A DNA stretch of 64,000 nucleotides from Saccharolobus islandicus REY15A. Its GTDB lineage: Archaea; Thermoproteota; Thermoprotei_A; Sulfolobales; Sulfolobaceae. Shown in pieces: positions 25,802 through 47,126 of this stretch. A program made the position numbers and the translations under genes. Every line of letters starts with the position of its first letter. Positions within the stretch are counted from its first letter, which is position 1. The stretch lies in assembly GCF_000189555.1 (NCBI RefSeq), contig NC_017276.1; one strand, written 5' to 3'. The notes beneath the pieces are model-generated. The model saw only the letters and a program-made list of their open reading frames with translations. It ran no database searches and was not told the origin of the DNA.

Positions 25802-26197
25802 TTAAAATTCCGCATTAACTTTCTTCTTTAATTCTTCGTCGTTCGATACAATCTCTAATCCATTCTCTAACGCTGTTGTAACGTGAATAGAATCTTCGAT
25901 ATCTATACTGTATTTTCTAACGTTTTCAACAATTTTACTCCACTCTGGGAGTTCTAAATATCCTATTCCTAAAGACTCAAGGGCTGTGATTGCTGTTTTA
26001 ATGAAATTATAGTCCTTTATTGATTTACCGAGTATTCTACTTAATACTATTATTAATAAAAATGGGGTTATAATTGAAGTGTATTTATCATCATCTTTAA
26101 TACTAAGCCACTTCTTAGCTCTTTCACCATATATCCTATCACCAGTTAGATAGTAGACAAAAACATTTACATCAAAATATTTTCCCTTACTTGTCAT
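25802..26197 (-). CDS. vapC: VapC PIN-domain toxin
   Basis: FDVNVFVY...IEDSIHVTTA...SNDEEL acidic tetrad pattern. Confidence 0.85.
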   Translation of the reverse strand: MTSKGKYFDVNVFVYYLTGDRIYGERAKKWLSIKDDDKYTSIITPFLLIIVLSRILGKSIKDYNFIKTAITALESLGIGYLELPEWSKIVENVRKYSIDIEDSIHVTTALENGLEIVSNDEELKKKVNAEF

Positions 26198-26429
26198 TTA
26201 ATAATACCTCAGTTAACGCCTCATTTAGCATTTTATCTATATCCACGTTCTCTAAATCTTTCCTAAATATACCATAATATTTGTCAATATCCACTACTAT
26301 AGACTCTAATATTATTTTAGAACCTTCTACCCTTAACTTTAACTTCTTACTTTTAATTAGTTCTCTCACTTCTTTAGGTATAGTGATTCTACCTCTATCA
26401 TCAATTGTTAATATAAATTCCTTGCCCAC
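26187..26429 (-). CDS. vapB: AbrB/MazE-type VapB antitoxin
   Basis: IDDRGRITIPKEVRE; GTG start at 26429 inferred; overlaps vapC by 11 nt. Confidence 0.8.
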   Translation of the reverse strand: MGKEFILTIDDRGRITIPKEVRELIKSKKLKLRVEGSKIILESIVVDIDKYYGIFRKDLENVDIDKMLNEALTEVLLNDK

Positions 26430-26556
26430 ATATACCCATTTAATAACCCCCAAATATAAACTTTTTCTTTTGCGTTGCTTTGTTGATATCTTCAATTTAT
26501 TTTATAAACATGATATGATATAAGGAGAATTTTTCAGCAATTAATATTTATTTCAA

Positions 26557-26920: not shown

Positions 26921-27279
26921 GGAGTAAAAGGGTTATTAACTTAGTGGGGATGTTGGGAATGAGTGAGTTAAGGGGTAACTGGCTATATTTTGTATTGACA
27001 AAAGCTATATTCTCTTCGCAATTACTAAGAAAAACGGACTATAATATGTTAAGCTACTGATCTATGGTAAAAATTCAAATTTATTTCAACAACTACTGTT
27101 AATTATCTTTTATAGTTCTCATTACAAACACTTTATTGAATTCTTTATTTAATCACAATGGTATTTACTATAGATTGGAGAGTTTGAAAAGAAATACATA
27201 ACAAGGTCAAGGATTTAGAATTATCTTTTATTTTTTGCTTAAAGAGAACTCACTATGCATAATCTTTTCATTATCTGTT

Positions 27280-27291
27280 TGAAACATGTTT
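27280..27291 (+). promoter_or_regulatory. ARA-box-like operator 1 (TGAAACATGTTT)
   Basis: Core AACATGTT ends 41 nt before ATG 27331; TATA-like ATATTAA follows. Confidence 0.75.
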
Positions 27292-27330
27292 GAAAGAGAT
27301 ATATTAACGACTCATCATTTTGAATTACCT

Positions 27331-28809
27331 ATGGGTAGGGTATTGGAAGAGGTAAAGGAGAATTATGGAAGGCTGAAGCTATATATAAACGGTGAGCTTG
27401 TAGATTCTAAAACTGATACAATAGGTAAGGCATATAATCCAGCTAAAGATGAAGTTATTGCTGAAGTCCCATTCTCAGCTAAAGATGAAGTTAGAGAGGC
27501 TATACAATCAGCTCAAGAGGCATTTGAGAAGTGGAGAGAAGTCCCAATAACTACTAGAATACAATACCTCTTCGCGCTTAAGAATAAGTTAGAGGAGTAT
27601 TCAGAAACAATAGCTAGGATAGTAGTTCAAAACCACGGAAAGACCATCCAAGAGGCCAGAGGGGATATGAGGAGAACTATAGAAAACGTTGAGGCTGCAA
27701 TAAGTGTTGCTTACACTTTATATAAGGGTGAACATCTAGATCAAGTATCTCAAGATATTGATGAAACCGTTGTTAGGGAACCTTTAGGAGTTTTTGGAAT
27801 TATAACTCCATTCAATTTCCCAACAATGGTTCCCTTCTGGTACTTACCATTTGCAATAGTTTTAGGAAATACGGTGGTCATTAAGCCTTCTGAAATAACT
27901 CCAGTACCAATGGATTTTATTATTAAAATTTTTGACGAGGTCAAGTTACCTAGAGGTGTTGTAAATGTCGTTCACGGTGCTAAGGATGTAGTTGACGAGT
28001 TCCTTACGAATAAATTAATCCAAGGTGTAACATTCGTAGGTTCGACGAGAGTAGGAAAGTACATTTATGAAAATGCAGGGAAGAGCGGTAAGAAGGCCAT
28101 TGTTCAAGCAGGAGCTAAGAACTTTGTCGTAGTAATGCCAGATGCTGATTTAAATAAGACAATACCCTCTGTTATCTCAGCGTTCTTTGGCAATGCAGGG
28201 CAAAGATGTTTAGCAGCTGCTAATTTAGTAGCAGTAGGTAATATTTATGACGATGTTAAGAGGAAGTTCATGGAGGCTTCAAAACAATTAAAGATAGGTT
28301 ACGGTTTGGATGAAAGTGTAGACATGGGCCCAGTTGTTACGAAAGACGCTAAAAAGAGGATAATAGGATATATAGAAAAGGGTATAGAAGAAGGAGCAAA
28401 ACTATTGTTAGATGGTAGGGAAGCAAAAGTACTTGACTATCCCAATGGATATTTTCTGGGTCCAACTATATTTGATGAAGTGACACCGGAAATGACGATA
28501 GCAAGGGAGGAGATATTTGGACCAGTAGCGTCAATAATTCATCTAAGAAGTTTAGATGAGGCAATAGATATTATAAACAAGAGCAATTACGGTAATGCGT
28601 CATCAATATTTACCACAAGTGGTTATTATGCTAGAAAGTTCAGGCGTGAGGTCAACGCCGGAAATATAGGCATTAATATAGGTGTAGCTGCGCCAATGGC
28701 GTTCTTTCCATTTGGAGGCAGAAAGGAATCCTTCTTTGGCGTACTGCATGGGCAAATAGATAGCGTAGATTTCTTCACAGATAAAAAGGTAGTAATAACA
28801 AGATGGTAA
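27331..28809 (+). CDS. CoA-acylating (methyl)malonate-semialdehyde dehydrogenase-like ALDH
   Basis: ITPFNFP, KPSE, AGQRCLA, EEIFGP; lacks the usual ELGG Glu (QAGAKN), as in MMSDH; start moved to 27331 because ATG 27286 lies inside the operator. Confidence 0.85.
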   Translation: MGRVLEEVKENYGRLKLYINGELVDSKTDTIGKAYNPAKDEVIAEVPFSAKDEVREAIQSAQEAFEKWREVPITTRIQYLFALKNKLEEYSETIARIVVQNHGKTIQEARGDMRRTIENVEAAISVAYTLYKGEHLDQVSQDIDETVVREPLGVFGIITPFNFPTMVPFWYLPFAIVLGNTVVIKPSEITPVPMDFIIKIFDEVKLPRGVVNVVHGAKDVVDEFLTNKLIQGVTFVGSTRVGKYIYENAGKSGKKAIVQAGAKNFVVVMPDADLNKTIPSVISAFFGNAGQRCLAAANLVAVGNIYDDVKRKFMEASKQLKIGYGLDESVDMGPVVTKDAKKRIIGYIEKGIEEGAKLLLDGREAKVLDYPNGYFLGPTIFDEVTPEMTIAREEIFGPVASIIHLRSLDEAIDIINKSNYGNASSIFTTSGYYARKFRREVNAGNIGINIGVAAPMAFFPFGGRKESFFGVLHGQIDSVDFFTDKKVVITRW

Positions 28810-28833
28810 AAATTAATTTTTACCTTTCTTTTT

Positions 28834-29520
28834 TTAGCTATCCTTTCTTTCCTCTTCTTGCTGCGATATGTTGTTAATTACATTGTAGAATTTTAGGTCG
28901 TCAATATATCGTTTAATTATTCTCGACTCAGCTGATCTTAAATGGTACGTGAAAGTGGATTTACTTATATTTATCAATTTAGATATTTTATCAGACTTAA
29001 TTCTCCTGGGAAAATCAAAATAGCCATTTTTATAAGCCAAAATTAAAGTTTTAAGTTCATATGGAGTCAGTTCATCCTCAGTTACATTTAATTCGTGAGA
29101 GCCAATAAACTCCACATTCCCTTTAGACCTAAGCTTCTCCCTTAATTCATTAATGTAACTTTCATACAATAAAATTCGCCAATATTCCTTTCCATCATAC
29201 TTAAATCCATCTAAGATTATCCCATCTACGGAGTTTATAATGTCCATTACACTATTTTTGTACCTCTTTCTGAAATCAAAAAGTATTTTCTTATTGTCAT
29301 TTGTGAGAGAAATTGATGAGTATCCAATGAAACTATTATTTCTTTTTATCTTATTCATTAAATCCTTGTATTTTTTATCCACAACGATTAGGGACCTAAT
29401 AGAGTTCCTCTCAGTATCTACAGAAAATCTCAAAGTTTTCACAATGTATTTACCAACTAGATTAGTCCAACAGTTCTCATGTTCAACTGAAAACGTAATT
29501 TCCAATAGTCTGTCATTCAT
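28834..29520 (-). CDS. Bacterio-opsin-activator-type (HTH_10) transcriptional regulator
   Basis: C-terminal LTPYELKTLILAYKNGYFDFPRRI...STFTYHLRSAE. Confidence 0.88.
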   Translation of the reverse strand: MNDRLLEITFSVEHENCWTNLVGKYIVKTLRFSVDTERNSIRSLIVVDKKYKDLMNKIKRNNSFIGYSSISLTNDNKKILFDFRKRYKNSVMDIINSVDGIILDGFKYDGKEYWRILLYESYINELREKLRSKGNVEFIGSHELNVTEDELTPYELKTLILAYKNGYFDFPRRIKSDKISKLINISKSTFTYHLRSAESRIIKRYIDDLKFYNVINNISQQEEERKDS

Positions 29521-29703
29521 ACATTTTACCTATAATACTAATTTCTGATAATAATTTTTAAACTTTATTACGAGCCACCCTATCTTAAATTACGGAATCC
29601 AGCAAATTCTTCATAGTAAATTAAGTTTCTATTTAAAAACATTAATGGGGTACTCATTGAGATTTAAATCAATTCATTAATCTAATTTACTTTATTTATC
29701 GTA

Positions 29704-29715
29704 TCAAACATGTTA
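29704..29715 (+). promoter_or_regulatory. ARA-box-like operator 2 (TCAAACATGTTA)
   Basis: Core ends 40 nt before ATG 29754. Confidence 0.75.
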
Positions 29716-29753
29716 GAGAAATCCATATTAGTAGTAACATAAAATCTCTATTG

Positions 29754-30839
29754 ATGAAGGCAGCTAGATTAGTGGAATTTCAAAAGCCTCTGAAGATAGA
29801 GGATCTCGAAGTTCCTAAAGTTGGAAAGGGAGATGTGCTTCTAAAAGTGATAAGCTGTGGAATATGTAGATCAGATTGGCATCTATGGCGTGGAGATCCT
29901 GCTTTGGTAGCATATATGCAGTGGAGTGGTGGTAAGTTACCAATAACTCAAGGTCATGAGGTTTATGGAGAAGTCGTAGAGGTCGGAGAGAGTGTAGCTA
30001 AATTGAAAAAGGGAGATAAGGTAGTCATGCCTGCTTCTTCTACCGGAGATAATAGGACATGCAAATACTGCATGGAAGGAGATTCAAATGTTTGTGATCA
30101 CTTGGTAATAGCTGGTTATGGAATTAATGGGTGCTTTGCTGAGTACATGTTAGTCCCAGAGAGGTCAGTAATTGATCTAGTTAAAGTACCAGATGGAATA
30201 AAGCCAGAGTGGGCTGCTCTAAGTTCTTGTGGTTTTGGAACTTCATGGAACGCGTTTACAATGAAGACTAATTTAAAGCCCGGTGACATGGTGGTCACAA
30301 TCGGAGCAGGAGGGATGGGTTTGAGTGGTATAGTAATAGCTAACGCTCTTGGTGCTAAAGTAATAGCTGTAGACGTTAACGAACGATCTTTAGAGAAAGC
30401 TAAAATATTAGGTAGCATTGAGACTTATAAATATTCTGGTAAGTCTGAAGAATTGAATGAAATAGTAGAGGATATTATGAAGAAGTATGGTTCAGTGGAC
30501 GTAGTGTATGATACTACAGGAATTCCAGAGGCTGTCATACCGTTTTTACCTCTCCTTAGAGTGCATGGGACATTACTATTAGCGGGGCTTATGATGAAGG
30601 GGAAAGAGACTTTTCCATTGCCAGCAGATTTAGTGGTAGCAAGGGAAATCAGAATACAAGGAGTATTAATGTTACCAGCTCAAAAATTCGATACAATATT
30701 TAAATTAATGAAAGAAGGAAAGATTAATCTAGATCCAGTTACGTACAAGACTATAAGCATCTATGATGTCAATGATGCTTACAAGGAAATGAGCGAGTAC
30801 AAAAATGCAGGAAGAATTATTATTAATAAGTTTAGCTAA
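29754..30839 (+). CDS. Zn-dependent alcohol dehydrogenase (MDR family)
   Basis: CGICRSD, GHE, CKYC...C and GAGGMG motifs. Confidence 0.9.
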
Positions 30840-30859
30840 ATTTTTCCCTTTTCTAATTG

Positions 30860-30871
30860 TGAAACATGTTT
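30860..30871 (+). promoter_or_regulatory. ARA-box-like operator 3, orphaned (TGAAACATGTTT)
   Basis: Followed by TTATTAA at the usual spacing, then IS debris instead of a gene. Confidence 0.65.
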
Positions 30872-30888
30872 TATAAAGGGTTATTAAC

Positions 30889-31050
30889 CTAGGATAACCT
30901 AAAATTGGAAGATCACCAACACTTGCTATCCTAACAGTCATTGCTTCAAAGTCCACATTATAACTTGCTTTAGGAGTTAACCATACAGTGGGCTTATATA
31001 CTCTCGGAAACCTACCCTTTTTAGGATTATTATACCAACCTATATAGGTT
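30889..31050 (-). pseudogene. tnpB: N-terminal-region fragment of an IS605-family TnpB
   Basis: [50 protein letters not shown] resembles Sulfolobales TnpB (recall). Confidence 0.65.
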
Positions 31051-31055
31051 TTATT

Positions 31056-31685
31056 AGTCGAGGAGAGTAATACTCTCCTCGACTGGGGAAACATGGTCGA
31101 TATACCAACTGAAGCAAAGTCTTCGGAGTGTGGCGTGACTAACCCCTACCGTCGGACTGAAAATTGTGATAAAATTCACGAATATAGGATGATTGAGGGG
31201 CAAGTACCAGATAACCACGTTTTATTAACAATCCCGGGTGTTGGGAGGCTTGCAGCTGGGGTTATTATTGGTATTGTTGGCGATATTAGGCGCTTTCCTA
31301 AACCAGAATCATTTGTTGCTTATTGTGGTCTTGATCCTCTTGTTGAAAGGAGTGGAAAGGCTGTGATAAGTAAGGGTATTTCGAAGAGGGGTAATAAGTA
31401 CTTGCGTAGTTTGTTTTACTTTTTGGCAGGGAGGAATTATTCTAGGAACCCAACATTGTTGAAGTTTTATGAAGCGCACAAGGATAGGCTTCAAGGTAAG
31501 AAGTTATTCACTGCCTTGGCTAGGAAGTTGGCTAGGATTGTTTGGAGTGTTTGGTATAATAATAGGCCTTATGAGCCTAAATAGGTGAACCCTTCCCCCG
31601 AATCGCCACGTGGGTTGAAAGGACCCACGTGGCAATCTTAGCTAATACTATGCTTGAAGTTTGACTGAAAGATTTATTACTGAAC
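31056..31685 (+). mobile_element. Internally deleted IS110-family element
   Basis: Only the C-terminal transposase half remains (TIPGVG, YCGLDP, SG, KRGNKYLR, ALARKLARI); structured non-coding flanks; boundaries approximate. Confidence 0.75.
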
Positions 31686-31877
31686 GCCCCATTTTCTTTA
31701 ATCTCCTCAAGCTTTAGAGTTAGCGAGGTGTGGAGAGGTGAAGGAGAGGTGATATTAAACGGTTCAATAAATGAGGAGCTTGAAGTTTTGAAGGTAAACA
31801 AGATTGAGGGAGGGTATTACTTCAATTGGTCATTTAAGCAATTAGGAGCAAAGATCCTATCTAGGATTTCGAAATAA
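31686..31877 (+). pseudogene. C-terminal remnant of an acetoacetate-decarboxylase-family paralog
   Basis: SEVWRGEGEVILNGSINEELEVLKVNKIEGGYYFNWSFK aligns by eye with [39 protein letters not shown] of the next gene. Confidence 0.65.
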
Positions 31878-31913
31878 TTAGTGAGATATGTTTTTAAGTG
31901 AAATAGGAAAACA

Positions 31914-31925
31914 TGAAACAAGTTT
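31914..31925 (+). promoter_or_regulatory. ARA-box-like operator 4 (TGAAACAAGTTT)
   Basis: Core ends 42 nt before ATG 31966. Confidence 0.7.
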
Positions 31926-31965
31926 AATGGAATGCTTATTTATTAGGCTAGAAGTAGAAGTAACC

Positions 31966-32781
31966 ATGACAAAAAATAACAACTCCAATTTCACCTTACC
32001 CCCCACGAGTAGTGGCAAATCACAAATTGTATTTCAACCGCCATGGTATTATGGAGTTACCTATATTGGAGCTCATGTAAAGTTCACTAAGGACTCTGCA
32101 GAAAAGGTAATTCCAAGATTCCTATCAACTGACGGTGAAGGTTGGGTTTACATTGCCGAATTTATTTCCACATCAGAGGACAATTGGGACTATATGTATC
32201 AAGATCCAGATTTAGTACAATACATGGAGGGAGCTATTGGGTTAAAAGTCAACTTTGAGGGAAAGAATTACTTGTATTTCCCATTCATGTGGGTAGATAA
32301 GGATTGGGCATTGGTAAGAGGTTGGTTAGATGGATATCCAAAGAAAATAGCTAAAATGGCCATGACTAAATTACACCCTCTGCTTCCAAAGTATAATAAA
32401 CCAGAGAGAGGACTAAAGTTGGGAGGATATGCTGTAAGGGGAGGAGGTGTAATGTTTAGAATGCAAGTCGAATTAGAGGAGAGGACTGATTCGCTGCCTC
32501 TTAAAAACTTCGGGCCATTCTTAAATATAAGGAGATTCCCAAGCAGGGGTGAGGGTGAAGTTGACCTATACGAAATAGTAAGTAGAGTTAGGGATGAGAG
32601 CAAATATGGAGAAATATGGAAGGGAAAAGCTAATGTGGAGTTAGGCGGATACGTTAATGATGAAGTTAACTTGCTCGAAATTGAGAGAACTATTGGCGGT
32701 TACCATTATACACTATATTTCAAAGTAACTACTACTCAACTAATAAGTAAGAAAATTGAAGAAGCAATCTCTCTAAAATAA
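31966..32781 (+). CDS. Acetoacetate-decarboxylase-like family protein
   Basis: PPWYYG, YMEGAI and [10 protein letters not shown] (Schiff-base Lys) motifs; start placed at 31966. Confidence 0.82.
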
Positions 32782-32849
32782 ATATAAAGATATGATATAT
32801 ATTTTTAAGATAACATATGTATGTTAAAAAATAATAATTTGAACTATTA

Positions 32850-33857
32850 TTAGATTTTTGCTCCTAATTTCTGTCTGACTATCTCCTTTAACTCGTCACT
32901 AATCCTAGTAGCTGGAATGGGACTACCATGCCAGAACGCTTCTTTTACATGTCCCCAATAATATAACCATCTGTCTCCATCCTCGTTAGTATCCCATACT
33001 ACTGGCTCCCAATCTGGTACAACATTAAGGTAACCGCCATGCAACAATTCAATTAAGTTACCACCAGGCTCTTTTACATAAAGTGAATTGCTATCTGTTA
33101 TGCCGTGTCTTAAAGGACCTCCTACAATTTCCAATCCGTAATCAGTGTAAAAGTCCGCAGCCCTAAGTATGTCATCTGCATAATCCACATTAAACGTAAC
33201 ATGGTTTAGTCTAGCCGGAACTCCAGAAGGATCTAGACCAATTGCTAAATCGTGTGCTGTACCGTTGACTGCCATCCAATACGCAATTTTCTTATCACCT
33301 TCCTTCAATATTTCATTTACTTTAAATGTGAGCTTCTTCAACAACTCTACGGTCTTAGCAAGAGCTCCATCGTTATAGGCGAAAATAAATATATGAGACA
33401 GATCCTTTGCCTGAACTCCTTTAGTAGGCTTTTTCATAGGCCTAGCTTTATATCCCGATCTAAGTTCACCTGAAGCTCGCCACGTTTTCATTTCCCATAC
33501 AAGTTTACCAATTTGACCACTGGGCAAGATAAATTTATAACCTCTTCCTATTCCCATATCTGGCTCTCCTTCATCCCATCCCAATCCTAATCCATTAGAG
33601 TTTACTATATTTATAGCATCAATTAGATCTTTTTCACTATAGGTTCTCCATACAATCTCCTTTACTCCAGCGGTATCAGATTCAGTAACCTTTAAACTAT
33701 ACGTGTACCAATCTTCCCAACCCCTTAGGTACACGGACTTACCCTTCCTTCCAACTTCATATAATCCCAAAATGTCCTTGAAAAACCATAATGTATCGTC
33801 GATTTTAGGCGTTAGAATTTCTACGTTAGCTAGTTGGGAAAGTAACTTATTTACCAT
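32850..33857 (-). CDS. xylE: Catechol 2,3-dioxygenase (extradiol, VOC fold)
   Basis: LSHIF, AHDLAI, LNHV, RHGIT...YVKEPGGNLIEL iron and catalytic motifs. Confidence 0.9.
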   Translation of the reverse strand: MVNKLLSQLANVEILTPKIDDTLWFFKDILGLYEVGRKGKSVYLRGWEDWYTYSLKVTESDTAGVKEIVWRTYSEKDLIDAINIVNSNGLGLGWDEGEPDMGIGRGYKFILPSGQIGKLVWEMKTWRASGELRSGYKARPMKKPTKGVQAKDLSHIFIFAYNDGALAKTVELLKKLTFKVNEILKEGDKKIAYWMAVNGTAHDLAIGLDPSGVPARLNHVTFNVDYADDILRAADFYTDYGLEIVGGPLRHGITDSNSLYVKEPGGNLIELLHGGYLNVVPDWEPVVWDTNEDGDRWLYYWGHVKEAFWHGSPIPATRISDELKEIVRQKLGAKI

Positions 33858-33909
33858 TTTTAATACTCACCTTATTTTCCTTCTTTTTCTGTCGTATTAA
33901 AAAATCTAC

Positions 33910-33921
33910 TCAAACAAGTTT
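33910..33921. promoter_or_regulatory. ARA-box-like operator 5 between divergent genes (TCAAACAAGTTT)
   Basis: 42 nt before ATG 33962; on the minus strand it precedes TTTTTAAT and a predicted start near the GGTGAG RBS (33872) of the dioxygenase. Confidence 0.7.
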
Positions 33922-33961
33922 TATGTATAGCTTAATTCCGCCTTATATTTAGATAACATTC

Positions 33962-34381
33962 ATGAATGTGCTAAATAAGTTAGGTATATCAGACGAATTA
34001 GCAGATATGTTAATAAGTGAGGCAGTAAAGAAGGCTAAAGAGCTAGGAGTGAAGGTTTCTATAGCAATAGTAGATGAAGGAGGAGAGTTGAAGGCTTTTA
34101 AGAGAATGGACGGTGCACCAATCTTAACCATAGAGATAGCCATAGATAAAGCGTGGACTGCGGTAAGTTTTGGTATACCAACACACGAGTGGTACAACAT
34201 GCTTAAAGACAACCCCCCACTGGCAATGGGATTTCCTAAAATACCTAGGTTAATAATCTTCGGTGGAGGATTTCCTATAGTCTATAAAGGGCAAGTAATA
34301 GGAGGAATAGGAATATCTGGCGGATCTGCGGAACAAGATATGGAAATTGCCAAGAATGCTCTTAAAAAATTGGAATCATAA
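33962..34381 (+). CDS. GlcG/HbpS (heme-binding) family protein
   Basis: AIVDEGG, AIDKAWTA and GGIGISGG...QD motifs. Confidence 0.88.
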   Translation: MNVLNKLGISDELADMLISEAVKKAKELGVKVSIAIVDEGGELKAFKRMDGAPILTIEIAIDKAWTAVSFGIPTHEWYNMLKDNPPLAMGFPKIPRLIIFGGGFPIVYKGQVIGGIGISGGSAEQDMEIAKNALKKLES

Positions 34382-34500
34382 TTTTGTAAAATATTAGATA
34401 AACTATTTGATGTAGATATAAAATGTACAAGGATGGTTTAAACTTCATCTTCTATTTTTTAAATAACGCAAGGATTTTTTAAGTTCAAAATCTCTATACA

Positions 34501-34512
34501 TCAAACTTGTTA
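34501..34512 (+). promoter_or_regulatory. ARA-box-like operator 6 (TCAAACTTGTTA)
   Basis: Core ends 48 nt before ATG 34559; CTTAATAT follows. Confidence 0.65.
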
Positions 34513-34558
34513 GATTAAGCTTAATATTACTTTTTACCGTTTTTGAATCTAGATCAAG

Positions 34559-35773
<1,215 letters not shown>

Positions 35774-35849
35774 GTGTGGGCTGAATCCTTTTTCACGTTA
35801 ATATAGAAATCTTTTTATATTTGAGTATGTTAAAATTTTATTTATTAAG

Positions 35850-36040
35850 GATGATCTCTCATGCCGATGTGGGCTATGCCCAAAAGGGTGAGGGGGATTA
35901 CGGAGATATGAGCCCCGTGCCGTTGGGCTCAAAGGAGTCCCATGATCCACCTACCATAAGTAGGTGGTTGAGGGCTAAGTCCCTACACTCGATCATGAAT
36001 GAATATAAAATGAGTGAAATGAAAGTGTAGGGACAAACGG
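35850..36040 (+). mobile_element. Right-end remnant of an IS607-family element (tnpB tail / omega-RNA region)
   Basis: GC-rich with three stems (35909-35931, 35947-35967, 35979-35989 with 36024-36034), ends AAACGG; peptide resembles Sulfolobus IS607 TnpB tails (recall). Confidence 0.6.
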
Positions 36041-36058
36041 ATAAAGTTACTTCTTTTT

Positions 36059-36070
36059 TCGAACATGTTT
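36059..36070 (+). promoter_or_regulatory. ARA-box-like operator 7 (TCGAACATGTTT)
   Basis: Core ends 40 nt before ATG 36109; TTTTTATATA follows. Confidence 0.75.
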
Positions 36071-36108
36071 AAGAATTATTTTTATATACGAATGATACAC
36101 ACCTACTT

Positions 36109-36915
36109 ATGAAACCAGTTCCTGCAGAACCTAAACTACCATCAAGAGATGAGTATTATGATTTGGCGAACAAGCTAGAGTGGGCACCGAAATACGTAAA
36201 AGAAGAAGAACTATTTCCAGTAGATATGAGTGGAATACCGAATTTACCGATAGACGTATGGGCCGAGTTATATGATGCCCCCTATAAGGTGACATATAGG
36301 GAGTATGTAAAGAATCAAAAGGAGAAAGATCAAAGACTTTTCTCGGTAAGAGAGGCTGGAGTAAGAGCAGAGTTAGTAAAGAAATTGGATAAGACATATC
36401 ATCAAGGCTCCTTCTGTTTCCATATAACTGCGGTTCCTATACCAGAATATACTGCGTCTATAGCAGAAGCAAGGATGGCGAGGTTTGGGAAAGCCGGTGA
36501 ATGGAGAAACTTATCCACATTCGGTTCTATGGATGAGGTAAGACACGCACAAGTGCAAATCTTATTATCTCATGATAGTATACAAGCTAGTCCTAAGTTC
36601 GCCTATGCACATAAGATGTTCTGGGTTGACGGCTGGTTACCAATAGCAGCTAGATCGTTCTTTGACGATACTATTACTGGGACTAATGCAATAGAATTCG
36701 CCTTAATGACTACCTTTGCATTTGAGACTGGATTTACCAATTTACAATTTGTAGCATATGCCGCAATGGCAAATAAGACTAATGATTTCGTGTTTTCCTC
36801 AACAACTCAGAGTATACAGACTGATGAATCTAGGCACGCACAAATAGGGCACCCAGTTCTAAAGACCTTTGTTGACGTGACAAAGTTGAATGAAGAGATG
36901 AAAAAGAAAATTTAA
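36109..36915 (+). CDS. tmoA: Aromatic monooxygenase alpha subunit, N-terminal half (diiron four-helix bundle)
   Basis: All six ligands present: PEY, DEVRH, FETG, DESRH. Confidence 0.9.
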   Translation: MKPVPAEPKLPSRDEYYDLANKLEWAPKYVKEEELFPVDMSGIPNLPIDVWAELYDAPYKVTYREYVKNQKEKDQRLFSVREAGVRAELVKKLDKTYHQGSFCFHITAVPIPEYTASIAEARMARFGKAGEWRNLSTFGSMDEVRHAQVQILLSHDSIQASPKFAYAHKMFWVDGWLPIAARSFFDDTITGTNAIEFALMTTFAFETGFTNLQFVAYAAMANKTNDFVFSSTTQSIQTDESRHAQIGHPVLKTFVDVTKLNEEMKKKI

Positions 36916-36940
36916 TTTATTTTTTAATTTTTTTCCTTTG
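36913..36940 (+). terminator. T-rich archaeal terminator-like tract after tmoA-N
   Basis: TAATTTATTTTTTAATTTTTTCCTTT directly after the stop. Confidence 0.5.
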
Positions 36941-37089
36941 TACCTTACTCTTTTTAAAGACACCTCATATGAGTAGGATTTAAAAACTATAAACTGTAAA
37001 CATTAGTAATTCCACAAAGTTCTTATTCGTTTGGATATCATAAAATAAGAAGTAATAATACAAAAACTTACTGGGAGTACTAATGTTTA

Positions 37090-37101
37090 TCAAACTTGTT
37101 A
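37090..37101 (+). promoter_or_regulatory. ARA-box-like operator 8 (TCAAACTTGTTA)
   Basis: Core ends 37/40 nt before ATG 37137/37140; CTTAAAAA follows. Confidence 0.75.
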
Positions 37102-37136
37102 GAACAATTCTTAAAAAGTATAAAAAAGACTAACTG

Positions 37137-38072
37137 ATGATGAGTAGAGAGGGAGGTTTAGGTCAAACTAAGGGAGAGGTCAAGCAAGCCTTATCTAATG
37201 TCTCAGAAGGACTAATGAAAAATTATAGAAACACTGTTGAATTTGCTGTTAGAATGAGAGAAAAAGGTCCAGCATATAAAGAGGCAGGAGAATATTTAAT
37301 AGCGAAAGGATTCTGGCTATCCCTTAGGCTAATAGGAGCATTAACTGGAGTTTCTATGGATTACCTCACTCCACTAGACGCTAGAATAATGTCGTACAAG
37401 GAGTTTATAACAGAATGGGTAGGTGCCCAATTTAAGAGATTACTAGAAGATTATGGGATAAGATTACCTTGGTACTGGCAGTGGTTTGAATTAGAGTTAG
37501 ATCATTGGCATCATAACTTTATTATAGGATTATATACGTGGAGAAGGACTCTAAATGTCGCATTTAGAGGTCCAACGCCTGATGAGAGAAAATGGTTAAA
37601 CGAGAAATACCCACACTGGGAGAAGTTTTTCGGAAGAGTTTGGGACTTATACATAAAGAAGATAATTGATGGACAAATACCATTACCATTAACTGCAGTA
37701 CATTTATGTACAGTTTGTCAGGTACCAATACAAGCACCTGTAAACGGAAAGTACTTAAGAATCTACTTAAAAGAGTACAAGGGAAAGATATATACGTTTG
37801 ATAGTCCAGCATGCTTATGGATTTTTGAACAAGAACCAGATAGATATGCTGGAAGAAGGACTTACACGCAAAGAGTACTTGAGGGGATGATACAGTTTAC
37901 TGAAGAGGCATACAAGGATCCTAAGAGACTACTTGAAGAGGTAATATGGAATATGGGACAAACGGAAGAAGGGGAGGCTGGTCTAGACCCTACTGATGGT
38001 GCTTATGCCCTATTATATAAAGAGAAAGATCCAGATTTCTATAATAGGATAAAGAAATATACGGAGGGGTAA
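37137..38072 (+). CDS. tmoA: Aromatic monooxygenase alpha subunit, C-terminal half, with novel ~45-aa N-terminus
   Basis: TGVSMDYLTPL..SYKEFITEW, PWYW, EKYPHW, and YHS-like CTVCQVP...FDSPAC. Confidence 0.88.
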   Translation: MMSREGGLGQTKGEVKQALSNVSEGLMKNYRNTVEFAVRMREKGPAYKEAGEYLIAKGFWLSLRLIGALTGVSMDYLTPLDARIMSYKEFITEWVGAQFKRLLEDYGIRLPWYWQWFELELDHWHHNFIIGLYTWRRTLNVAFRGPTPDERKWLNEKYPHWEKFFGRVWDLYIKKIIDGQIPLPLTAVHLCTVCQVPIQAPVNGKYLRIYLKEYKGKIYTFDSPACLWIFEQEPDRYAGRRTYTQRVLEGMIQFTEEAYKDPKRLLEEVIWNMGQTEEGEAGLDPTDGAYALLYKEKDPDFYNRIKKYTEG

Positions 38073-38077
38073 AGAAA

Positions 38078-38512
38078 ATGAGTATGGAAGCAGTGCCAAT
38101 AATATTCGTCCCAGAAGAAGGCACAGTGTGGTTACCCGCTGTACTTCCAACAAACATTACGGTAAAAGAGGCTATTGAAATGTTGAAGAGTCTAACAGTA
38201 AACGTGTTAGTATGGGAAAAGAAGGATAAGGACTTAAGATTAGTTAACTACTTTACTGGTCAAGTCTTAGATCTTAATGCCAAAGTTAGAGACGTAATAA
38301 AGCCATATGACGTTTTCTGGTTAGTCTGGTGGCCTCCTAAGGAAGAGTTCTGGAAGCCAGAGAATCAGAACGATGATATATTCAAGATTATAAAGGAGAC
38401 TGAAGAGGCTATAAAGTTAGCCCCAAGATCTCCTTCAGTACTATTTGCAGATGAGATTGAAAAATATAGTATCGTTAGAAGATTGGAAAGGGAGGGTAAA
38501 TTAAGGGCGTGA
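38078..38512 (+). CDS. tmoB: Monooxygenase gamma subunit (TmoB-like) with C-terminal extension
   Basis: Position after the alpha subunit; beta-grasp-like pattern. Confidence 0.6.
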   Translation: MSMEAVPIIFVPEEGTVWLPAVLPTNITVKEAIEMLKSLTVNVLVWEKKDKDLRLVNYFTGQVLDLNAKVRDVIKPYDVFWLVWWPPKEEFWKPENQNDDIFKIIKETEEAIKLAPRSPSVLFADEIEKYSIVRRLEREGKLRA

Positions 38513-38516
38513 GACT

Positions 38517-38921
38517 ATGAGTTATCCTGGAGAATTCCATAAAGTGCTAACACTAGACGATATTTATGAAGGTGAGGCTAAGTTAGTAGAGGTCAATAGA
38601 TACGAAATTCTAGTAGTCAATATGAATGGAGAAATAAAGGCGTATTATGCAAGGTGTGCCCACGCATTAGGTTTAATAGAGCCAAATTCTTTTGACGGTG
38701 AGGAGAAAATCATATGCCCAGTACATTTATGGGAGTATAATGCAAGGACAGGAGAGAGCATAAATCCTGAGGGAAGTTCCCTCTTTCCATTGGATGTGAA
38801 GGTTGAAGGTAATGACATTTTTGTTAAAGTTCCGTCTGTTCCCGTTTCCGAGTTCAAGGTTAAATGGTTTGGTATGTATAGGCAAAGAGGTGTGATAAAT
38901 GAGTTTGGAGTTAACTCTTGA
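38517..38921 (+). CDS. tmoC: Rieske ferredoxin
   Basis: CAH...CPVHLWEY. Confidence 0.9.
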   Translation: MSYPGEFHKVLTLDDIYEGEAKLVEVNRYEILVVNMNGEIKAYYARCAHALGLIEPNSFDGEEKIICPVHLWEYNARTGESINPEGSSLFPLDVKVEGNDIFVKVPSVPVSEFKVKWFGMYRQRGVINEFGVNS

Positions 38922-39246
38922 ATCAATTTTAGATAAATATCAAATAACAGATTTAAGTAAATTATCACAAAATATTGTAGGTCCAGTACTTACGAAAGAT
39001 GAGTTCAGCTACGGTGTAGTTGAAGCTATAGCGGGTGATAATCCAAATACTTTCAAAGGAGTTATCGACAGAGGCTCATACATAAGAATAGTGGGTGAAA
39101 GGGAACTTGTTTTAAACAAAAGTACGTTAGAGGAAGTGCTGGGTAGAGAAGTTAGATTTCCAGGAGAGGTTGAGGTAAGGATGAGTGCATTTGCAGGAAA
39201 GATCATTGTAAGAGGGGATTATCTAAAATGGTATTTGGAGTTATGA
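38899..39246 (+). CDS. tmoD: Monooxygenase effector protein
   Basis: VGPVL...DRGSYIRI...FPGEVEVRMSAFAGKI (MmoB/DmpM family). Confidence 0.88.
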   Translation: MSLELTLESILDKYQITDLSKLSQNIVGPVLTKDEFSYGVVEAIAGDNPNTFKGVIDRGSYIRIVGERELVLNKSTLEEVLGREVRFPGEVEVRMSAFAGKIIVRGDYLKWYLEL

Positions 39247-39247
39247 G

Positions 39248-40390
39248 GTGAAAAAGGTTATGACTAGATTAGAGGATTTGGAATGGTATAGAAGGTATAA
39301 ACAAATGTTCGGAGCGTTCAAAAGTGGAGTAGAAGGTGATCGGTTTTTCAGAGATTATGAATATAGGGGGTACAAAAGAGTCTGGTCAACTTGGCCGATG
39401 CTAGAGAAGAAACTAGGAAGGAAAAAGCCATCGGAATATCAAATAGTCACCTATGCATTGTCATACTGGGCGGATCCAAGATCCCCTACTTACATCTATG
39501 ATAAGGGACCATTTGAACTAGGGACAGAGCATATAACTCAAAAATGGTATAAACACTTTAGAGACAACTCACCATTCATTAAGCCATTATTCGAAAGAGG
39601 AGAATGGCATGACTATGAAGATCCATACAAACTTACATATTGGACCTACAACTCCATGGCAGATGATAATGAAACCTTTTTAGATAAGATATATGAGGAA
39701 ATTGTAAATACTAAATACGATTGGAACCTAAGTGAGGAGGTACTGGAGTTATACAAGAACGTTTACGATCCATTAAGGTATGTATTCCACATCATGCAAA
39801 TGGAGTCAATGTATCTAGCTAGTATGGCTCCTACAAGTTCTATAACTAACGTATTCATATTTATGGGAATGGACCACATGAGAAGAGTCCAAAGAATTGC
39901 ACAAAGAGTAAAGATGCTAGATATTATATATCCAAGCTTAGGATTTGGAAAGGAAGCGAGAAAGATATTTGAGGAGAGTCCACTATTTCAACCAACAAGA
40001 GAAGTATTGGAGAAAATGTTAGCTACATATGATGTAGGAGAAAGCTTAGTAGCGTTTAACTTAGCGGTCAAATTCGTATTAGATGAGCTAATACTCCAAC
40101 ATCTAACGCAACAATTCAGTAAAATGGGGGATGAGATGATTAGGCACATTCACATGTCGTTCTATAACGATACATTAAGGCATAGACACCAAGCTCAAGA
40201 ACTGTTCAAATACGCTTTTAGTAAGGAACCAAGCTTAAAAGACGTTATCAAACCTTGGCTAAAGGATTGGCAAGAGATGGCATTTAAGGCTACAGAAGGG
40301 TTTAGGGATGTGCTCAAAGGAGAATATGATAATACTATAAAGCAGATCAAGAAGGCTCATAGTGAATATCTTGGAGGAATAGGTTTATGA
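39248..40390 (+). CDS. tmoE: Monooxygenase beta subunit
   Basis: KPSEYQIVT, YEDP..LTYWTY, RRVQRIA and DTLRHR motifs. Confidence 0.85.
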   Translation: MKKVMTRLEDLEWYRRYKQMFGAFKSGVEGDRFFRDYEYRGYKRVWSTWPMLEKKLGRKKPSEYQIVTYALSYWADPRSPTYIYDKGPFELGTEHITQKWYKHFRDNSPFIKPLFERGEWHDYEDPYKLTYWTYNSMADDNETFLDKIYEEIVNTKYDWNLSEEVLELYKNVYDPLRYVFHIMQMESMYLASMAPTSSITNVFIFMGMDHMRRVQRIAQRVKMLDIIYPSLGFGKEARKIFEESPLFQPTREVLEKMLATYDVGESLVAFNLAVKFVLDELILQHLTQQFSKMGDEMIRHIHMSFYNDTLRHRHQAQELFKYAFSKEPSLKDVIKPWLKDWQEMAFKATEGFRDVLKGEYDNTIKQIKKAHSEYLGGIGL

Positions 40391-40872
40391 AAGATAAGAT
40401 TAAAGATAAGATTGTGGAAATTTTAAGGCAAATTTACGATCCAGAGATTCCAATAAATATATATGACTTAGGACTAGTAAGAGAGATAAAAGTTGAAGAC
40501 AATAGGGTTTTTGTTAGATTAATTTTCACTGCTAATAAGGGGTGTACCTTAGCAGATCTTATGGCAGTTCAAGTTAAGTATAAACTAATGAAGGCGTTTC
40601 CAGACTATAACGTGGAAGTCAAGAGTGATTTTAACGAAGAATGGAATATAGGCTATGCAACAGAAACGGGTAGGCTGATGTTAGAGGAAATATATGGAAA
40701 AGAAGCAGTGGATGCGTTAGCTAATAAGACTAAAATAGAGGAAATAGTATCGATAAATAAGGTCAGGTTAGAGGATTTCGATCCACGGGAATACATGAAA
40801 AAAGCAGTGGATGAGAGATATAAGAGATTTAAGGAATGGTACGATAAACACAATATATTGATTTCTCATTGA
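40387..40872 (+). CDS. DUF59/MIP18 metal-cluster assembly protein
   Basis: LRQIYDPEIPINIYDLGLV...TANKGC. Confidence 0.88.
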   Translation: MKDKIKDKIVEILRQIYDPEIPINIYDLGLVREIKVEDNRVFVRLIFTANKGCTLADLMAVQVKYKLMKAFPDYNVEVKSDFNEEWNIGYATETGRLMLEEIYGKEAVDALANKTKIEEIVSINKVRLEDFDPREYMKKAVDERYKRFKEWYDKHNILISH

Positions 40873-40961
40873 TAATAACGTTCCTTTTCATCTAAAATAT
40901 TTATAAAACGTGGTCTTCAAGTGTCAAAACACTTTTTATGCGTGTGAAATCATTAATATTC

Positions 40962-42611
40962 ATGAATGGTTCAAAACTTCTCTTGACTCTGTTAAAGGAT
41001 TATGACGTTAAACACATATTTGGTTTACCGGGCGAATCCTCAATATCATTATATGATCAACTTAAAGAAGGCGAAGTACTACACATAATCACTAGAGATG
41101 AGAGAAACGCAGTTTACATGGCTGACACATACGCAAAGCTAACTTATAAACCTGGAGTTGCTGAAGGCCCAAGTGTTGGTTCAATATATATGCTCCCTGG
41201 AGTTGCTGAAGCGTATAAGTCATCTACACCGTTAATAGTAATAACTACTGATACACCATTATACGGAGAGAAGGAGAATTATTTGACCGCATTAGATCAA
41301 GCTTCCCTATTTAGACCGATAACTAAGGAAACTATAACAGTGTATAATGTTGAGGAATTACCTCATGCTATAAGGAGAGCATTCAGATTAAGTACTAGTG
41401 GAAAACCTGGACCAGTTCACATTAGAATACCCCTAGATGTTTTAGAAGATGAATTGAAAGGCAACGTTGAACTTAAAGCCCAAAAGGAGTTCTCGAAATA
41501 TCCATCTCAAAGACCTTTAGCGGATCGTGAAATGATAAGGAAAGCCGTAGATTTAATTTTGAAGAGTGAATTTCCAGTAATAATTTGCGGTCAAGGAGCA
41601 CTTTACTCAATGGCGTGGGATGAGGTAACTGAATTAGCTGAGTTATTAGGAATTCTTGTGGGGACTACAATAACTGGTAAGGGTTGTATTCCAGAAACCC
41701 ATCCCTTGTCAATAGGTGTGGTTGGCGGTAGGGGCGGTGCAAATTTTTCGAACAGTATTGTAGATAAATCAGACCTTGTAATTCTCATAGGGAGTAATAC
41801 GGATTCAGCAAATACTTATAACTGGACTATACCATCCAGAGGCAAAACCGTAATTCATATTGACATTAGCGAGACTGAGACTGGGAATAATTACGATAGT
41901 ATAAACCTCATAGGGGATGCTAAAGTAACATTGAGGGAGTTGATTAAGGAAATTAAAGGTAGTGGAAAAATTGATAAAAAGAACATTATTTTAGATAGAA
42001 GTGCATTCGAAGATAGGCTTAGTAAGGAGAGGAGAGAAGCAGTAAACCCGTTACGTTTCATAAAGGAACTTTGGAGTCTATCACCTGAAGAGGCTGTATT
42101 AATAGCTGATCCCGGAGTTAGCGCAATCTACACTGCTGCTTTCTATAAGGCCAAAAAAGTTGGTAGGTATTTCATTTTTAACTATGGTCTAGGTGGTCTT
42201 GGCTATTCAATTCCAGCATCTGTAGGTGCTTATTTTGCAAGGCCTAACTCTTTGATTTTCTCTCTTTCTGGAGATGGGAGTTTCGGTTTCTCAGCTGGTG
42301 AACTAGAGACCATAAGGAGAGTCAATGCTAATGTGGTTATTATAATCTTTAATAATGGAAGTTACGGTTGGATAAGGGCTGAAATGAAAGCTAGGGGTAA
42401 GGACATTGTTGGAACTGATTTTTCAAGTCCAGATTACGTTAAGATCGCTGAAGGGTATGGACTATCCGCGTATGGGATAACCAATGATGAAGAGATATCT
42501 GATACGTTAAAGAGGGCTATAAAGAATACTCCTTCTTTAGTTGAGGTTATTGTTGAGCCAGAGGATAAGTTCGTCCCTCCGGTTATGCCTTGGAGTAAGA
42601 GATTTCTTTAA
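40962..42611 (+). CDS. Thiamine-diphosphate enzyme (acetolactate-synthase-like fold)
   Basis: FGLPGE, TRDE, GPVH and GDGSFG...FNNGSYG motifs. Confidence 0.88.
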   Translation: MNGSKLLLTLLKDYDVKHIFGLPGESSISLYDQLKEGEVLHIITRDERNAVYMADTYAKLTYKPGVAEGPSVGSIYMLPGVAEAYKSSTPLIVITTDTPLYGEKENYLTALDQASLFRPITKETITVYNVEELPHAIRRAFRLSTSGKPGPVHIRIPLDVLEDELKGNVELKAQKEFSKYPSQRPLADREMIRKAVDLILKSEFPVIICGQGALYSMAWDEVTELAELLGILVGTTITGKGCIPETHPLSIGVVGGRGGANFSNSIVDKSDLVILIGSNTDSANTYNWTIPSRGKTVIHIDISETETGNNYDSINLIGDAKVTLRELIKEIKGSGKIDKKNIILDRSAFEDRLSKERREAVNPLRFIKELWSLSPEEAVLIADPGVSAIYTAAFYKAKKVGRYFIFNYGLGGLGYSIPASVGAYFARPNSLIFSLSGDGSFGFSAGELETIRRVNANVVIIIFNNGSYGWIRAEMKARGKDIVGTDFSSPDYVKIAEGYGLSAYGITNDEEISDTLKRAIKNTPSLVEVIVEPEDKFVPPVMPWSKRFL

Positions 42612-44678: not shown

Positions 44679-45333
44679 CTCTTATCACAAGCTACTTAAG
44701 TTAACAGTATAAATAAATAAGACCGTTTATAAAGTTTATAAATCATGTAGTTATAACTCTTAAATCTTCCATTTATAGAGTTATTATTAATTTGCTTTGT
44801 GGAGTTGTTGAATTTTTATAGACCTTGATCTTCTTAGAATTTGATAAATTCAGAATTAAATGTCTAATTGAAATTAGTTTATACTCATGGTATATAACCT
44901 AATCTCAAGGACGGACTCAATATAGCATACTTGATATACGCTCCTAAAATGTTTCTAGCTTAAACAAAAGTCCTCAAAAAGTAAATCATGTATAGTGAGA
45001 TTTGGAACTATAAACTAACTTATTTCCATCATTACTAAGATTGAATAGTACACGTTATTATATGTGAAATTTCCATATTGTCTACTCTTCCTTTATGAAC
45101 TTCAAGATTTAGTTCAACTCCTATAACTTTCTGCATATTCTTTAACTTTTACATTATACTTTTTTAAGAGAACTTGTATTTCAAGATCACTAAAACTTTA
45201 ATCCCATCATTATGAATATCAAATCAACTTTTTTAATCTTATAATATCAATTATATCCCGTAAATTTTGAGAGAATATCTTGTAATTGATTCTAAAAAAT
45301 CATAAAAAGTAATATTAAGTATTACGCATGATA

Positions 45334-46212: not shown

Positions 46213-46285
46213 AAATTAATTTTTGAACTAACTAATAAAAACCTAATCTACCTTAGTTATGATTATTTTATTAAGAGAAAAATGA

Positions 46286-46440
46286 TCAGATACCCTCTTC
46301 CAGCAAGGCATACCTAATGATTGGATCGGAAATTCTATACTCATCATTTCTTTTCTCTATGAATTCTATTTTTATCAATTTCCTATAATTTCTAGAAACT
46401 GTAGTATTGCTGACTTTTCTTCGGTTTTGGCAATTATCTG
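46286..46440 (-). pseudogene. C-terminal fragment of an archaeal ATPase (wHTH tail)
   Basis: LIKIEFIEKRNDEYRISDPIIRYAL. Confidence 0.5.
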
Positions 46441-46483
46441 ACTTCCTTATATAAAACATATTAGTCAGATCTGTATTACACAT

Positions 46484-46638
46484 ATCTGACTGGGGTGTAG
46501 GCCGTTGACTTCCTTGGACTTAAGGCCCGTCGGTGAGCCCGGCCTCCTCCAATTCAGACCGGAAGTTGGACAAAAAGCCCGAATAAAACATAATGGTGAG
46601 TATAAATGGAGGCCCCAGTTGCAGGAATAGATGTATAA
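46484..46638 (+). mobile_element. IS110-family (ISC1190-like) left end with first 10 transposase codons
   Basis: GC-rich non-coding leader, GGTGAG RBS, then MEAPVAGIDV* (46606-46638), the first DEDD Asp motif. Confidence 0.7.
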
Positions 46639-46754
46639 AAAGATAAATTAACTGTACTATAATAAGCAGTTTAACGCTATTGAGTAAAGCAGGTTTCATC
46701 GCTTGCGTAAGTAGTGTGGACTACGCTCGATTTTCAAGGAAAAGTTTTTATACC

Positions 46755-47081: not shown

Positions 47082-47126
47082 GTATAGTTTGTAAGTTTTA
47101 TAAACTTTAAACTTTCAGAAAAAAGT

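Follow-up and report, generated by a model that had tools for sequence, protein, structure and literature searches.

The region analysed here is a stretch of 64,000 nucleotides (nt) of Saccharolobus islandicus REY15A (contig NC_017276.1), which we call the window and whose GC content is 36.8%. It contains an island of genes for the breakdown of aromatic compounds in which one short palindrome, built on the octamer core AACWWGTT, recurs eight times, on all eight occasions between genes, together with a gene for a small regulator carrying an HTH_10 domain. The island is the orthologue of Sso1218-Sso1234 in S. solfataricus P2, the phenol monooxygenase and meta-cleavage genes, with which it is collinear and shares its Pfam content; from position 27184 to 40060 the nucleotide identity with P2 is 87-90%, a remnant of an insertion sequence (IS) excepted. 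The initial annotation had taken the palindromes for a promoter family of an aromatic-catabolism island, and we find that they indeed form one. More specifically, the set of boxes very probably marks a phenol-inducible regulon, undescribed within the literature that we searched, which resembles the ARA-box system of the Sulfolobales. The features are given below in their order along the window; scores in bits refer to a symmetrised position weight matrix (PWM) that was built solely from 20 sites of other genera, the window sites being left out.

27280-27293: box 1, TGAAACATGTTTGA, in the aldehyde dehydrogenase promoter; 41 nt separate the end of the core from ATG 27331, and ATATATTA begins 9 nt past the core; 20.9 bits.
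27331-28809, + strand: aldehyde dehydrogenase (ALDH), Sso1218 orthologue; Pfam Aldedh, E 9e-144; about 90% nucleotide identity to P2.
28834-29520, - strand: candidate activator of 228 amino acids (aa), Sso1219 orthologue; Pfam HTH_10.
29704-29717: box 2, TCAAACATGTTAGA, in the promoter of the Zn alcohol dehydrogenase gene; 20.0 bits.
29751-30839, + strand: Zn-dependent alcohol dehydrogenase (ADH), Sso1220 orthologue; Pfam ADH_N and ADH_zinc_N.
30860-30873: box 3, TGAAACATGTTTTA, promoter of the first gene of the acetoacetate decarboxylase (ADC) family, the Sso1221 orthologue, which is truncated.
30888-31698, + strand: IS110-family remnant, absent from P2; its open reading frame (ORF) 31093-31584 matches Pfam Transposase_20.
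31914-31927: box 4, TGAAACAAGTTTAA, promoter of the second ADC-family gene.
31966-32781, + strand: ADC-family protein, Sso1222 orthologue; Pfam ADC, E 3e-59.
32850-33857, - strand: extradiol catechol 2,3-dioxygenase (C23O), Sso1223 orthologue; Pfam Glyoxalase; syntenic with P2.
33910-33923: box 5, TCAAACAAGTTTTA, one box serving both C23O and the divergently transcribed HbpS-like gene, flanked on either side by a TATA-like tract.
33962-34381, + strand: HbpS/GlcG-like protein, Sso1224 orthologue; Pfam HbpS-like, E 1e-41.
34501-34514: box 6, TCAAACTTGTTAGA, ferredoxin reductase promoter; 16.7 bits.
34559-35773, + strand: NAD(FAD)-dependent (ferredoxin) reductase, Sso1225 orthologue; Pfam Pyr_redox_2 and Reductase_C.
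36059-36072: box 7, TCGAACATGTTTAA, promoter of the gene for the 268-aa hydroxylase subunit.
36109-36915, + strand: diiron hydroxylase subunit, 268 aa; Pfam Phenol_Hydrox, E 4e-66.
37090-37103: box 8, TCAAACTTGTTAGA, promoter of the main monooxygenase operon.
37137-40872, + strand: monooxygenase operon, Sso1227/8-Sso1234 orthologues; Pfam matches.
40938-42611, + strand: thiamine diphosphate (ThDP)-dependent enzyme, possibly the operon's final gene; Pfam TPP_enzyme N, M and C; without a box to itself.
52281-52294: candidate additional box, TTTAACAAGTTATA, with ARA-type TTT... flanks, upstream of the gene for phosphoenolpyruvate carboxykinase (PEPCK; 50428-52242, - strand).

The monooxygenase operon encodes a YHS-domain protein, a 144-aa protein, a Rieske ferredoxin, an MmoB/DmpM effector protein, the 380-aa hydroxylase subunit and an iron-sulphur (FeS) assembly protein; its genes overlap or are tightly packed, and no box lies inside it. 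Near box 3, homology between the window and P2 stops at 30887 and resumes at 31699, with 811 nt in place of about 640 nt of P2 sequence: the IS110 remnant has replaced the promoter-proximal part and the 5' ~620 nt of the Sso1221 orthologue, of which a 3' remnant is left at about 31699-31880. Box 3 had been regarded as an orphan. It is not truly one, since the equivalent box of P2 lies 38 nt ahead of the Sso1221 start, and because of this and of the homology break at 30887 we take it to be the promoter of the decarboxylase gene that the IS truncated. The initial annotation had also moved two start codons. Position 27331 for ALDH does correct the longest-ORF call, whose ATG at 27286 lies inside box 1, although the public annotation (P2, 492 aa) already has the start there. 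In the second ADC-family gene, the longest ORF and the P2 annotation (297 aa) both extend far enough at the N-terminus to take in box 4. Here the move to 31966 is confirmed, since in an alignment of N-termini the first residue of the homologues, drawn from five genomes, corresponds to the codon at that position.

How unusual is the recurrence of the palindrome? The 12-mer TSRAACWWGTTW, in which form it had first been described, is present on the + strand at the first position of each of the eight island boxes. Over the whole window it has 10 matches against 0.40 expected from 100 dinucleotide shuffles of the window (the highest count in any shuffle being 3), namely the eight + strand sites of the island, a palindromic - strand match at 27282, and one at 208. 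The claim that no octamer elsewhere fits the 12-mer was thus slightly wrong. Site 208 is probably a chance match, lying as it does inside an ORF like those of the major facilitator superfamily (MFS), without the A at +3, with a low score, and failing the 14-mer given below. The octamer itself occurs 21 times in the window against 7.0 expected; its copies at 53158, 1258 and 63522 were rejected as sites, being intragenic and failing the 14-mer. The element is better described as a 14-bp palindrome, T-N-N-AAC-WW-GTT-N-N-A, with the consensus TCAAACWWGTTTGA: all eight island sites share T(-3) and A(+3) without exception, which gives the symmetric 14-mer TNNAACWWGTTNNA. This longer form has 9 matches in the window against 0.70 expected, a count that none of the 100 shuffles reached, and these are the eight island sites and the one at 52281, the latter being the one match in the window's 50 kb beyond the island. 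There were no matches in about 75 kb of other AT-rich Sulfolobales DNA (two unrelated 20-kb loci and cluster flanks), and 4 in a control of 963 kb of unrelated archaeal loci. As for the central dinucleotide, half of the eight island cores read exactly AACATGTT, the remainder AACAAGTT or AACTTGTT.

The boxes are also placed regularly with respect to the promoters. Measured from the end of the octamer, the distances to the start codons first reported, 41, 40, 42, 42, 48, 40 and 40 nt for boxes 1, 2 and 4 to 8, are reproduced; those for boxes 2 and 8 assume ATG 29754 and 37140, and the first in-frame starts, 29751 (TTG) and 37137 (ATG), give 37. The cores in the window thus end 37-48 nt ahead of a start codon, and counted as the core-to-ATG gap the range for the downstream + strand genes is 36-47 nt. 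In a set of 30 promoters of six genomes the called start mostly follows the core after 36-51 nt, most often near 40, with extremes of 24 and 65. The TATA-like tract that had been placed some 9-11 nt past the core is indeed seen 9-10 nt after it in the window. When the 30 promoters are aligned on the box, the column profile has a TATA-like block of A and T only at +10 to +17 after the core and an A at +7 like that of a TFB-recognition element (BRE), and given these two features the palindrome directly abuts the BRE. It occupies about -51 to -38 relative to the start codon, and we expect that the box-led transcripts are probably mostly leaderless. C23O is unlike the other units, in that it appears to have a short leader (33858-33909) with a GGTGA motif resembling a Shine-Dalgarno sequence before its ATG, and box 5 stands 55 nt from this ATG and 41 nt from that of the HbpS-like gene.

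We compared the island with the loci around eight regulator orthologues: those of P2 (two assemblies), S. tengchongensis, Sulfolobus sp. S-194, Acidianus manzaensis, A. brierleyi, Metallosphaera javensis, a contig of a metagenome-assembled genome with 48% GC (L075) and a JGI metagenome contig (L076). Five genera have kept the palindrome. Gene order and orientation vary widely among these loci, and yet AACWWGTT precedes the first gene of nearly every unit, the box-led units being those of ALDH, ADH, ADC, C23O, the HbpS-like protein, the reductase, the 268-aa hydroxylase and the YHS operon, and in A. brierleyi also a molybdenum-cofactor oxidoreductase. In the 20 sites of other genera from which the PWM was built (consensus TTTCAAACATGTTTGAAA), T(-3)/A(+3) is present in 39 of 40 half-sites and the centre is AT, AA or TT, never TA; all eight window sites are within the top nine matches to this matrix, at 13.3-20.9 bits. 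Box 1 is kept in P2, S-194, both Acidianus species, S. tengchongensis and L076, box 7 in P2, S-194, A. brierleyi, L001, L075 and L076, and box 8 in P2, S-194, both Acidianus species and L075, while the sharing of one box between the dioxygenase gene and a divergent neighbour recurs in P2, S-194 and A. manzaensis. ALDH and the regulator gene lie tail to tail in all examined genomes but one, L075 showing no ALDH beside the regulator, and an FeS gene followed by the ThDP enzyme gene is likewise the order in S-194, L075 and L076. We hold it to be almost certain that the box is a functional, conserved regulatory site.

In S. tengchongensis (L068, 10001-15199) the regulator-ALDH pair stands beside a LigB/RraA/PIG-L cluster of protocatechuate type, not beside a phenol monooxygenase, and in that cluster a box is found at the ALDH promoter only.

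That the promoter family responds to phenol, as had been predicted, agrees with published RNA-seq of P2 on phenol versus glucose, where Sso1218, 1220-1225 and 1227-1234 are induced 10- to 384-fold (PMC7820114). Gene by gene, the increase was 382-fold for Sso1218 and 346-fold for Sso1220, 77-fold and 82-fold for the ADC-family genes Sso1221 and Sso1222, 31-fold for Sso1223, which is a characterised C23O, 43-fold for Sso1224 and 9.7-fold for Sso1225, 59-384-fold for the monooxygenase genes and 45-fold for Sso1234; the adjacent transposase gene Sso1217 was unchanged (PMC7820114). Both this study and Comte 2013 are silent on any promoter motif or regulator, and in the literature searched we found no mention of Sso1219 and no published description of the box or the regulator.

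What protein might read the box? The regulator gene of the island encodes an HTH_10 domain (Pfam PF04967) that scores 75 bits against a gathering cutoff of 23.1, residues 151-203 spanning the full 53-position model, and its N-terminal 148 residues have no Pfam match even at E values up to 10. The protein had been called Bat-type, a description that holds for the C-terminal HTH_10 domain and for nothing further, since Pfam finds no GAF or PAS domain in it. Across 16 orthologues the N-terminal alpha/beta domain of about 140 residues carries an invariant H-E-x-C-W motif near the N-terminus, and the predicted recognition helix, SKSTFxYHxRS, is likewise invariant. In the AlphaFold2 model (pLDDT, a predicted local confidence, 76.8) two beta-alpha-beta units of ferredoxin-like type are followed by the helical HTH region; the only significant neighbour of this model in the PDB is Ta1207 (5m86, E 6e-5), whose function is unassigned and which is uninformative on the effector. 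Orthologues of the regulator (52-97% identity) were found in no group but the Sulfolobales, in each case within a phenol or aromatic cluster, and in eight lineages the gene co-localises strictly with the boxes. No Sso1219-like orthologue was found in S. acidocaldarius, and a profile search of genome contigs with the regulator alignment returned M. javensis as its one and only Sulfolobales locus, the remainder being distant HTH_10 proteins of methanogens and others. From the co-localisation in eight lineages and the invariant recognition helix we infer that a protein of the Sso1219 type binds the box and activates. On contig L076, whose regulator is 75% identical, a AACAAGTT box at 9958-9965 lies 35 nt upstream of the regulator gene, which suggests autoregulation in that lineage only.

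A paralogous, SSO1008-like clade of Sulfolobales has SKQDFLYHLRN in the equivalent helix. Its genes (L073, L074) adjoin genes of amino-acid and peptide catabolism, namely FAD-oxidase/DUF1177/M20-peptidase and amino-acid-permease genes, and the promoters beside them carry a different palindrome, TTAAAGG-N4/5-CCTTTAA, nearer to the start codon (L073 6550-6646 and 12106-12215; L074 6570-6664 and 10640-10776). This pairing of helix and palindrome, which is correlative only, would fit a scheme in which each HTH_10 paralogue has its own operator.

Among the closest known systems is the ARA-box/XylR pentose regulon of the Sulfolobales (Brouns 2006; Peng 2009; van der Kolk 2020, PMC7264815). Promoters of this regulon need the ARA box, the conserved palindrome AACATGTT, for their pentose-induced activity, which depends on XylR, and a single T-to-C change at base pair 7 or 8 nearly abolishes this activity (PMC7264815). 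The likeness of the island boxes to it, which the initial annotation had pointed out, stands when set against the text and primers of that paper: a palindromic AAC-AT-GTT core is found in the ARA box and at four of the eight island sites, both kinds of box lie about 10-12 nt upstream of TATA and about 40 nt before the start of a catabolic gene, and in both systems a regulator gene is encoded near these genes; the ARA box acts as an upstream activating element, as the island boxes would. The S. acidocaldarius saci_2122 promoter, as we rebuilt it from the published primers, reads ...ACGTTTAACATGTTAAAATAAATACTAATAATTGATAAGCGTCTTACTTATCATA followed by the start codon, which puts its ARA box about 41 nt from the start with flanks TTT/AAA. 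The phenol boxes differ from this one reconstructed ARA box in having TCA/TGA as flanks, and from the ARA box in a centre that varies between AT, AA and TT. The proposed phenol regulon differs further in that its targets belong to aromatic and not to pentose catabolism, that its published inducer is phenol, and that its candidate regulator is Sso1219-like. Specificity would probably be set by the three positions that flank the AAC-WW-GTT core to the left and to the right.

The initial annotation had further treated XylR as itself a protein of the Bat/HTH_10 type, which it may be. XylR is described only as a predicted transcriptional regulator containing an HTH domain (PMC7264815), and no family assignment of Saci_2116 was found in the literature and supplements searched. 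The termini of XylR (Saci_2116/M1627_2327) can be read from the published primers as MMQIYKVRMR.../MMHVYKVEL... and ...QVFVDNSNKF/...ENFEPVIYKLSQ. They matched none of the 239 HTH_10 relatives retrieved and none of the best 150 of 2313 profile matches among 1.84 billion representatives, and a degenerate 24-mer derived from the XylR primers gave, in metagenomes, a single chance match that is non-archaeal. Two candidates for XylR were rejected: the P0084 clade, with the XylR-like N-terminus MKKLYKVKF..., is the SSO1008-type paralogue with other gene neighbours and another palindrome, and P0017, a paralogue from S. shibatae, clusters with the S. tengchongensis regulator.

We consider it likely that the local HTH_10 protein is an effector-responsive activator of the phenol regulon that works through the palindrome. 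In this model, whose mechanism would parallel that of the ARA-box/XylR pentose system, the eight sites would be upstream activating sequences of a phenol and catechol catabolic regulon. A homodimer of the 228-aa regulator would bind the palindrome through its C-terminal HTH_10 domains, and the N-terminal alpha/beta domain would sense phenol or an intermediate of the pathway; the effector-bound dimer would then help to recruit TFB/TBP and so stimulate assembly of the pre-initiation complex, as is thought for the ARA box. Nine units could be switched on in this way: ALDH, ADH, the two ADC-family genes, C23O together with the HbpS-like gene, for which a single box works in both directions, the reductase, the hydroxylase subunit and the main monooxygenase operon. 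Both the identity of the effector and activation in preference to repression are things that we infer.

Several observations weigh against this model. The promoter of the regulator gene has no proximal box in most genomes (in the window, box 2 lies 186 nt from the divergent regulator start and so is not promoter-proximal for it), and autoregulation accordingly lends the model no support. The regulator transcript Sso1219 does rise 12-fold on phenol (PMC7820114), but this could possibly be read-through from the convergent, 382-fold induced ALDH transcript. Some genes of the clusters lack a proximal box, namely the TPP enzyme generally, the reductase in A. brierleyi and ADH in A. manzaensis. Finally, because the core equals the ARA box at four of the eight sites, XylR or another factor could bind there instead of the local regulator or along with it.

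This last point can be carried further, for the boxes might be ARA boxes proper, read by XylR or by the same other factor, so that the island would belong to a broader regulon for alternative carbon sources and the local HTH_10 protein would be otherwise employed, for example as a co-regulator or as an effector sensor. Besides the four identical cores, the geometry equals that of the S. acidocaldarius ara promoter, and published expression data go some way in the same direction: SSO1300, a classical ARA-box gene that encodes D-arabinose dehydrogenase, rises 7.5-fold from glucose to phenol with no pentose present (PMC7820114, supplementary file 3), and the P2 PEPCK gene Sso2537 is 4.7-fold up (PMC7820114). 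In the window, 41 nt separate the ARA-type box at 52281 from the downstream PEPCK start at 52242, and a TTTATA begins 12 nt past the core. However, since the reference condition was glucose, the rise of SSO1300 and PEPCK could reflect either cross-talk or a mere release from glucose repression. Moreover, the flanks of the phenol boxes are consistently T-C/A-A ... T-G/T-A as against TTT...AAA in the one reconstructed ARA box, half of the phenol boxes are centred on AA or TT, and across genera the boxes strictly co-occur with the local regulator gene. We regard this alternative as unlikely. The cross-talk between phenol and pentose induction that the initial annotation had envisaged is only hinted at by the 7.5-fold rise of SSO1300, measured against glucose.

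A further scheme may be sketched, in which the Sulfolobales would possess a family of small paralogous one-component HTH_10 activators, XylR among them, whose members each read a palindrome abutting the BRE; two or more of these, the pentose and phenol members included, would have the AAC-WW-GTT core in common, with nothing but three flanking base pairs to distinguish their sites, and in the partly overlapping network that results aromatic catabolism, pentose catabolism and gluconeogenesis (PEPCK, SSO1300) would be cross-activated. We hold this to be possible, though doubtful.

Could the local HTH_10 protein instead be a repressor, which sits on the palindrome when phenol is absent and leaves it once the effector is present? 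Repression is common among one-component regulators that have palindromic operators, and the basal expression of the box-led genes on glucose is very low, at about 2-160 reads per kilobase per million (PMC7820114). Yet the palindrome lies wholly upstream of BRE/TATA and overlaps neither TATA, BRE nor the transcription start site, which are the usual targets of archaeal repressors; the ARA box in the identical position is an activating element (PMC7264815); and the strictly fixed phasing to TATA points to a protein-protein contact with the pre-initiation complex. Derepression seems to us an improbable account of the induction, and activation through the palindrome is the reading that we prefer.

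Lastly, that the recurrence is functionless, by chance in a genome of 37% GC where A/T-rich palindromes are common (the octamer occurs 13 times in the window apart from the island sites) or by promoter duplication during assembly of the cluster, is effectively refuted by the comparative data and deserves next to no credence, given that the shuffles never reach the observed counts, that the promoter sequences flanking the boxes are dissimilar to one another, that the box stands at like spacing in Metallosphaera-type contigs of 48-50% GC and in rearranged clusters, and that the AT-rich control DNA is devoid of it.

How does the proposed system compare with other known regulators? Bat, the bacterio-opsin activator, works through an upstream activating sequence, and the island regulator shares with it and with other haloarchaeal HTH_10 regulators the C-terminal HTH_10 DNA-binding domain; it differs from Bat in the absence of GAF and PAS domains, in an N-terminal domain that lies outside Pfam, and in its far smaller size. 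In bacteria, the dmp and tou clusters are governed by DmpR, XylR and TouR, sigma54-dependent enhancer-binding proteins of the NtrC family with an AAA+ domain. The common ground, a local aromatic-responsive activator of a multicomponent phenol or toluene monooxygenase and a meta-cleavage pathway, is an analogy of function, since the island has archaeal TBP/TFB promoters and a small HTH_10 protein and there is no homology. Closer in organism are BldR and BldR2 of S. solfataricus, regulators of aromatic aldehyde detoxification whose targets are the Sso2536 ADH gene and their own operon. These too are aromatic-responsive transcriptional activators of the same organism group, but they belong to the MarR family, have other targets and other binding sites, and are not encoded in the island.

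A cis-element is known for very few archaeal transcriptional activators, and the main inducible system for Sulfolobus genetics is that of the ARA box and XylR. If our proposal is right, the island would represent a second regulon on a promoter architecture of the ARA type, with nine promoters, 10- to 384-fold induction and very low basal expression. Its bidirectional box and its central dinucleotide variants would offer a natural allelic series for studying the contact of an activator with TFB/TBP, and the island would be a test case of whether different regulators discriminate between near-identical operators or fail to do so. It would also supply the missing regulatory layer of the phenol pathway, which has been studied in S. 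solfataricus since 2005, and provide a candidate phenol-responsive sensor and tight orthogonal promoters for the engineering of thermoacidophiles.

The surroundings of the island may be described briefly. Just upstream of it, at 25802-26495 on the - strand, the window encodes a PIN-domain protein and an AbrB/MazE-like antitoxin, a probable toxin-antitoxin pair of the VapBC type. After the island, from 42993 to 50382, come genes resembling those of aromatic and fatty-acid catabolism, none of them with a box: these encode a 561-aa Rieske-domain protein, a pirin, an MFS transporter, an enoyl-CoA hydratase and a Zn-ADH.

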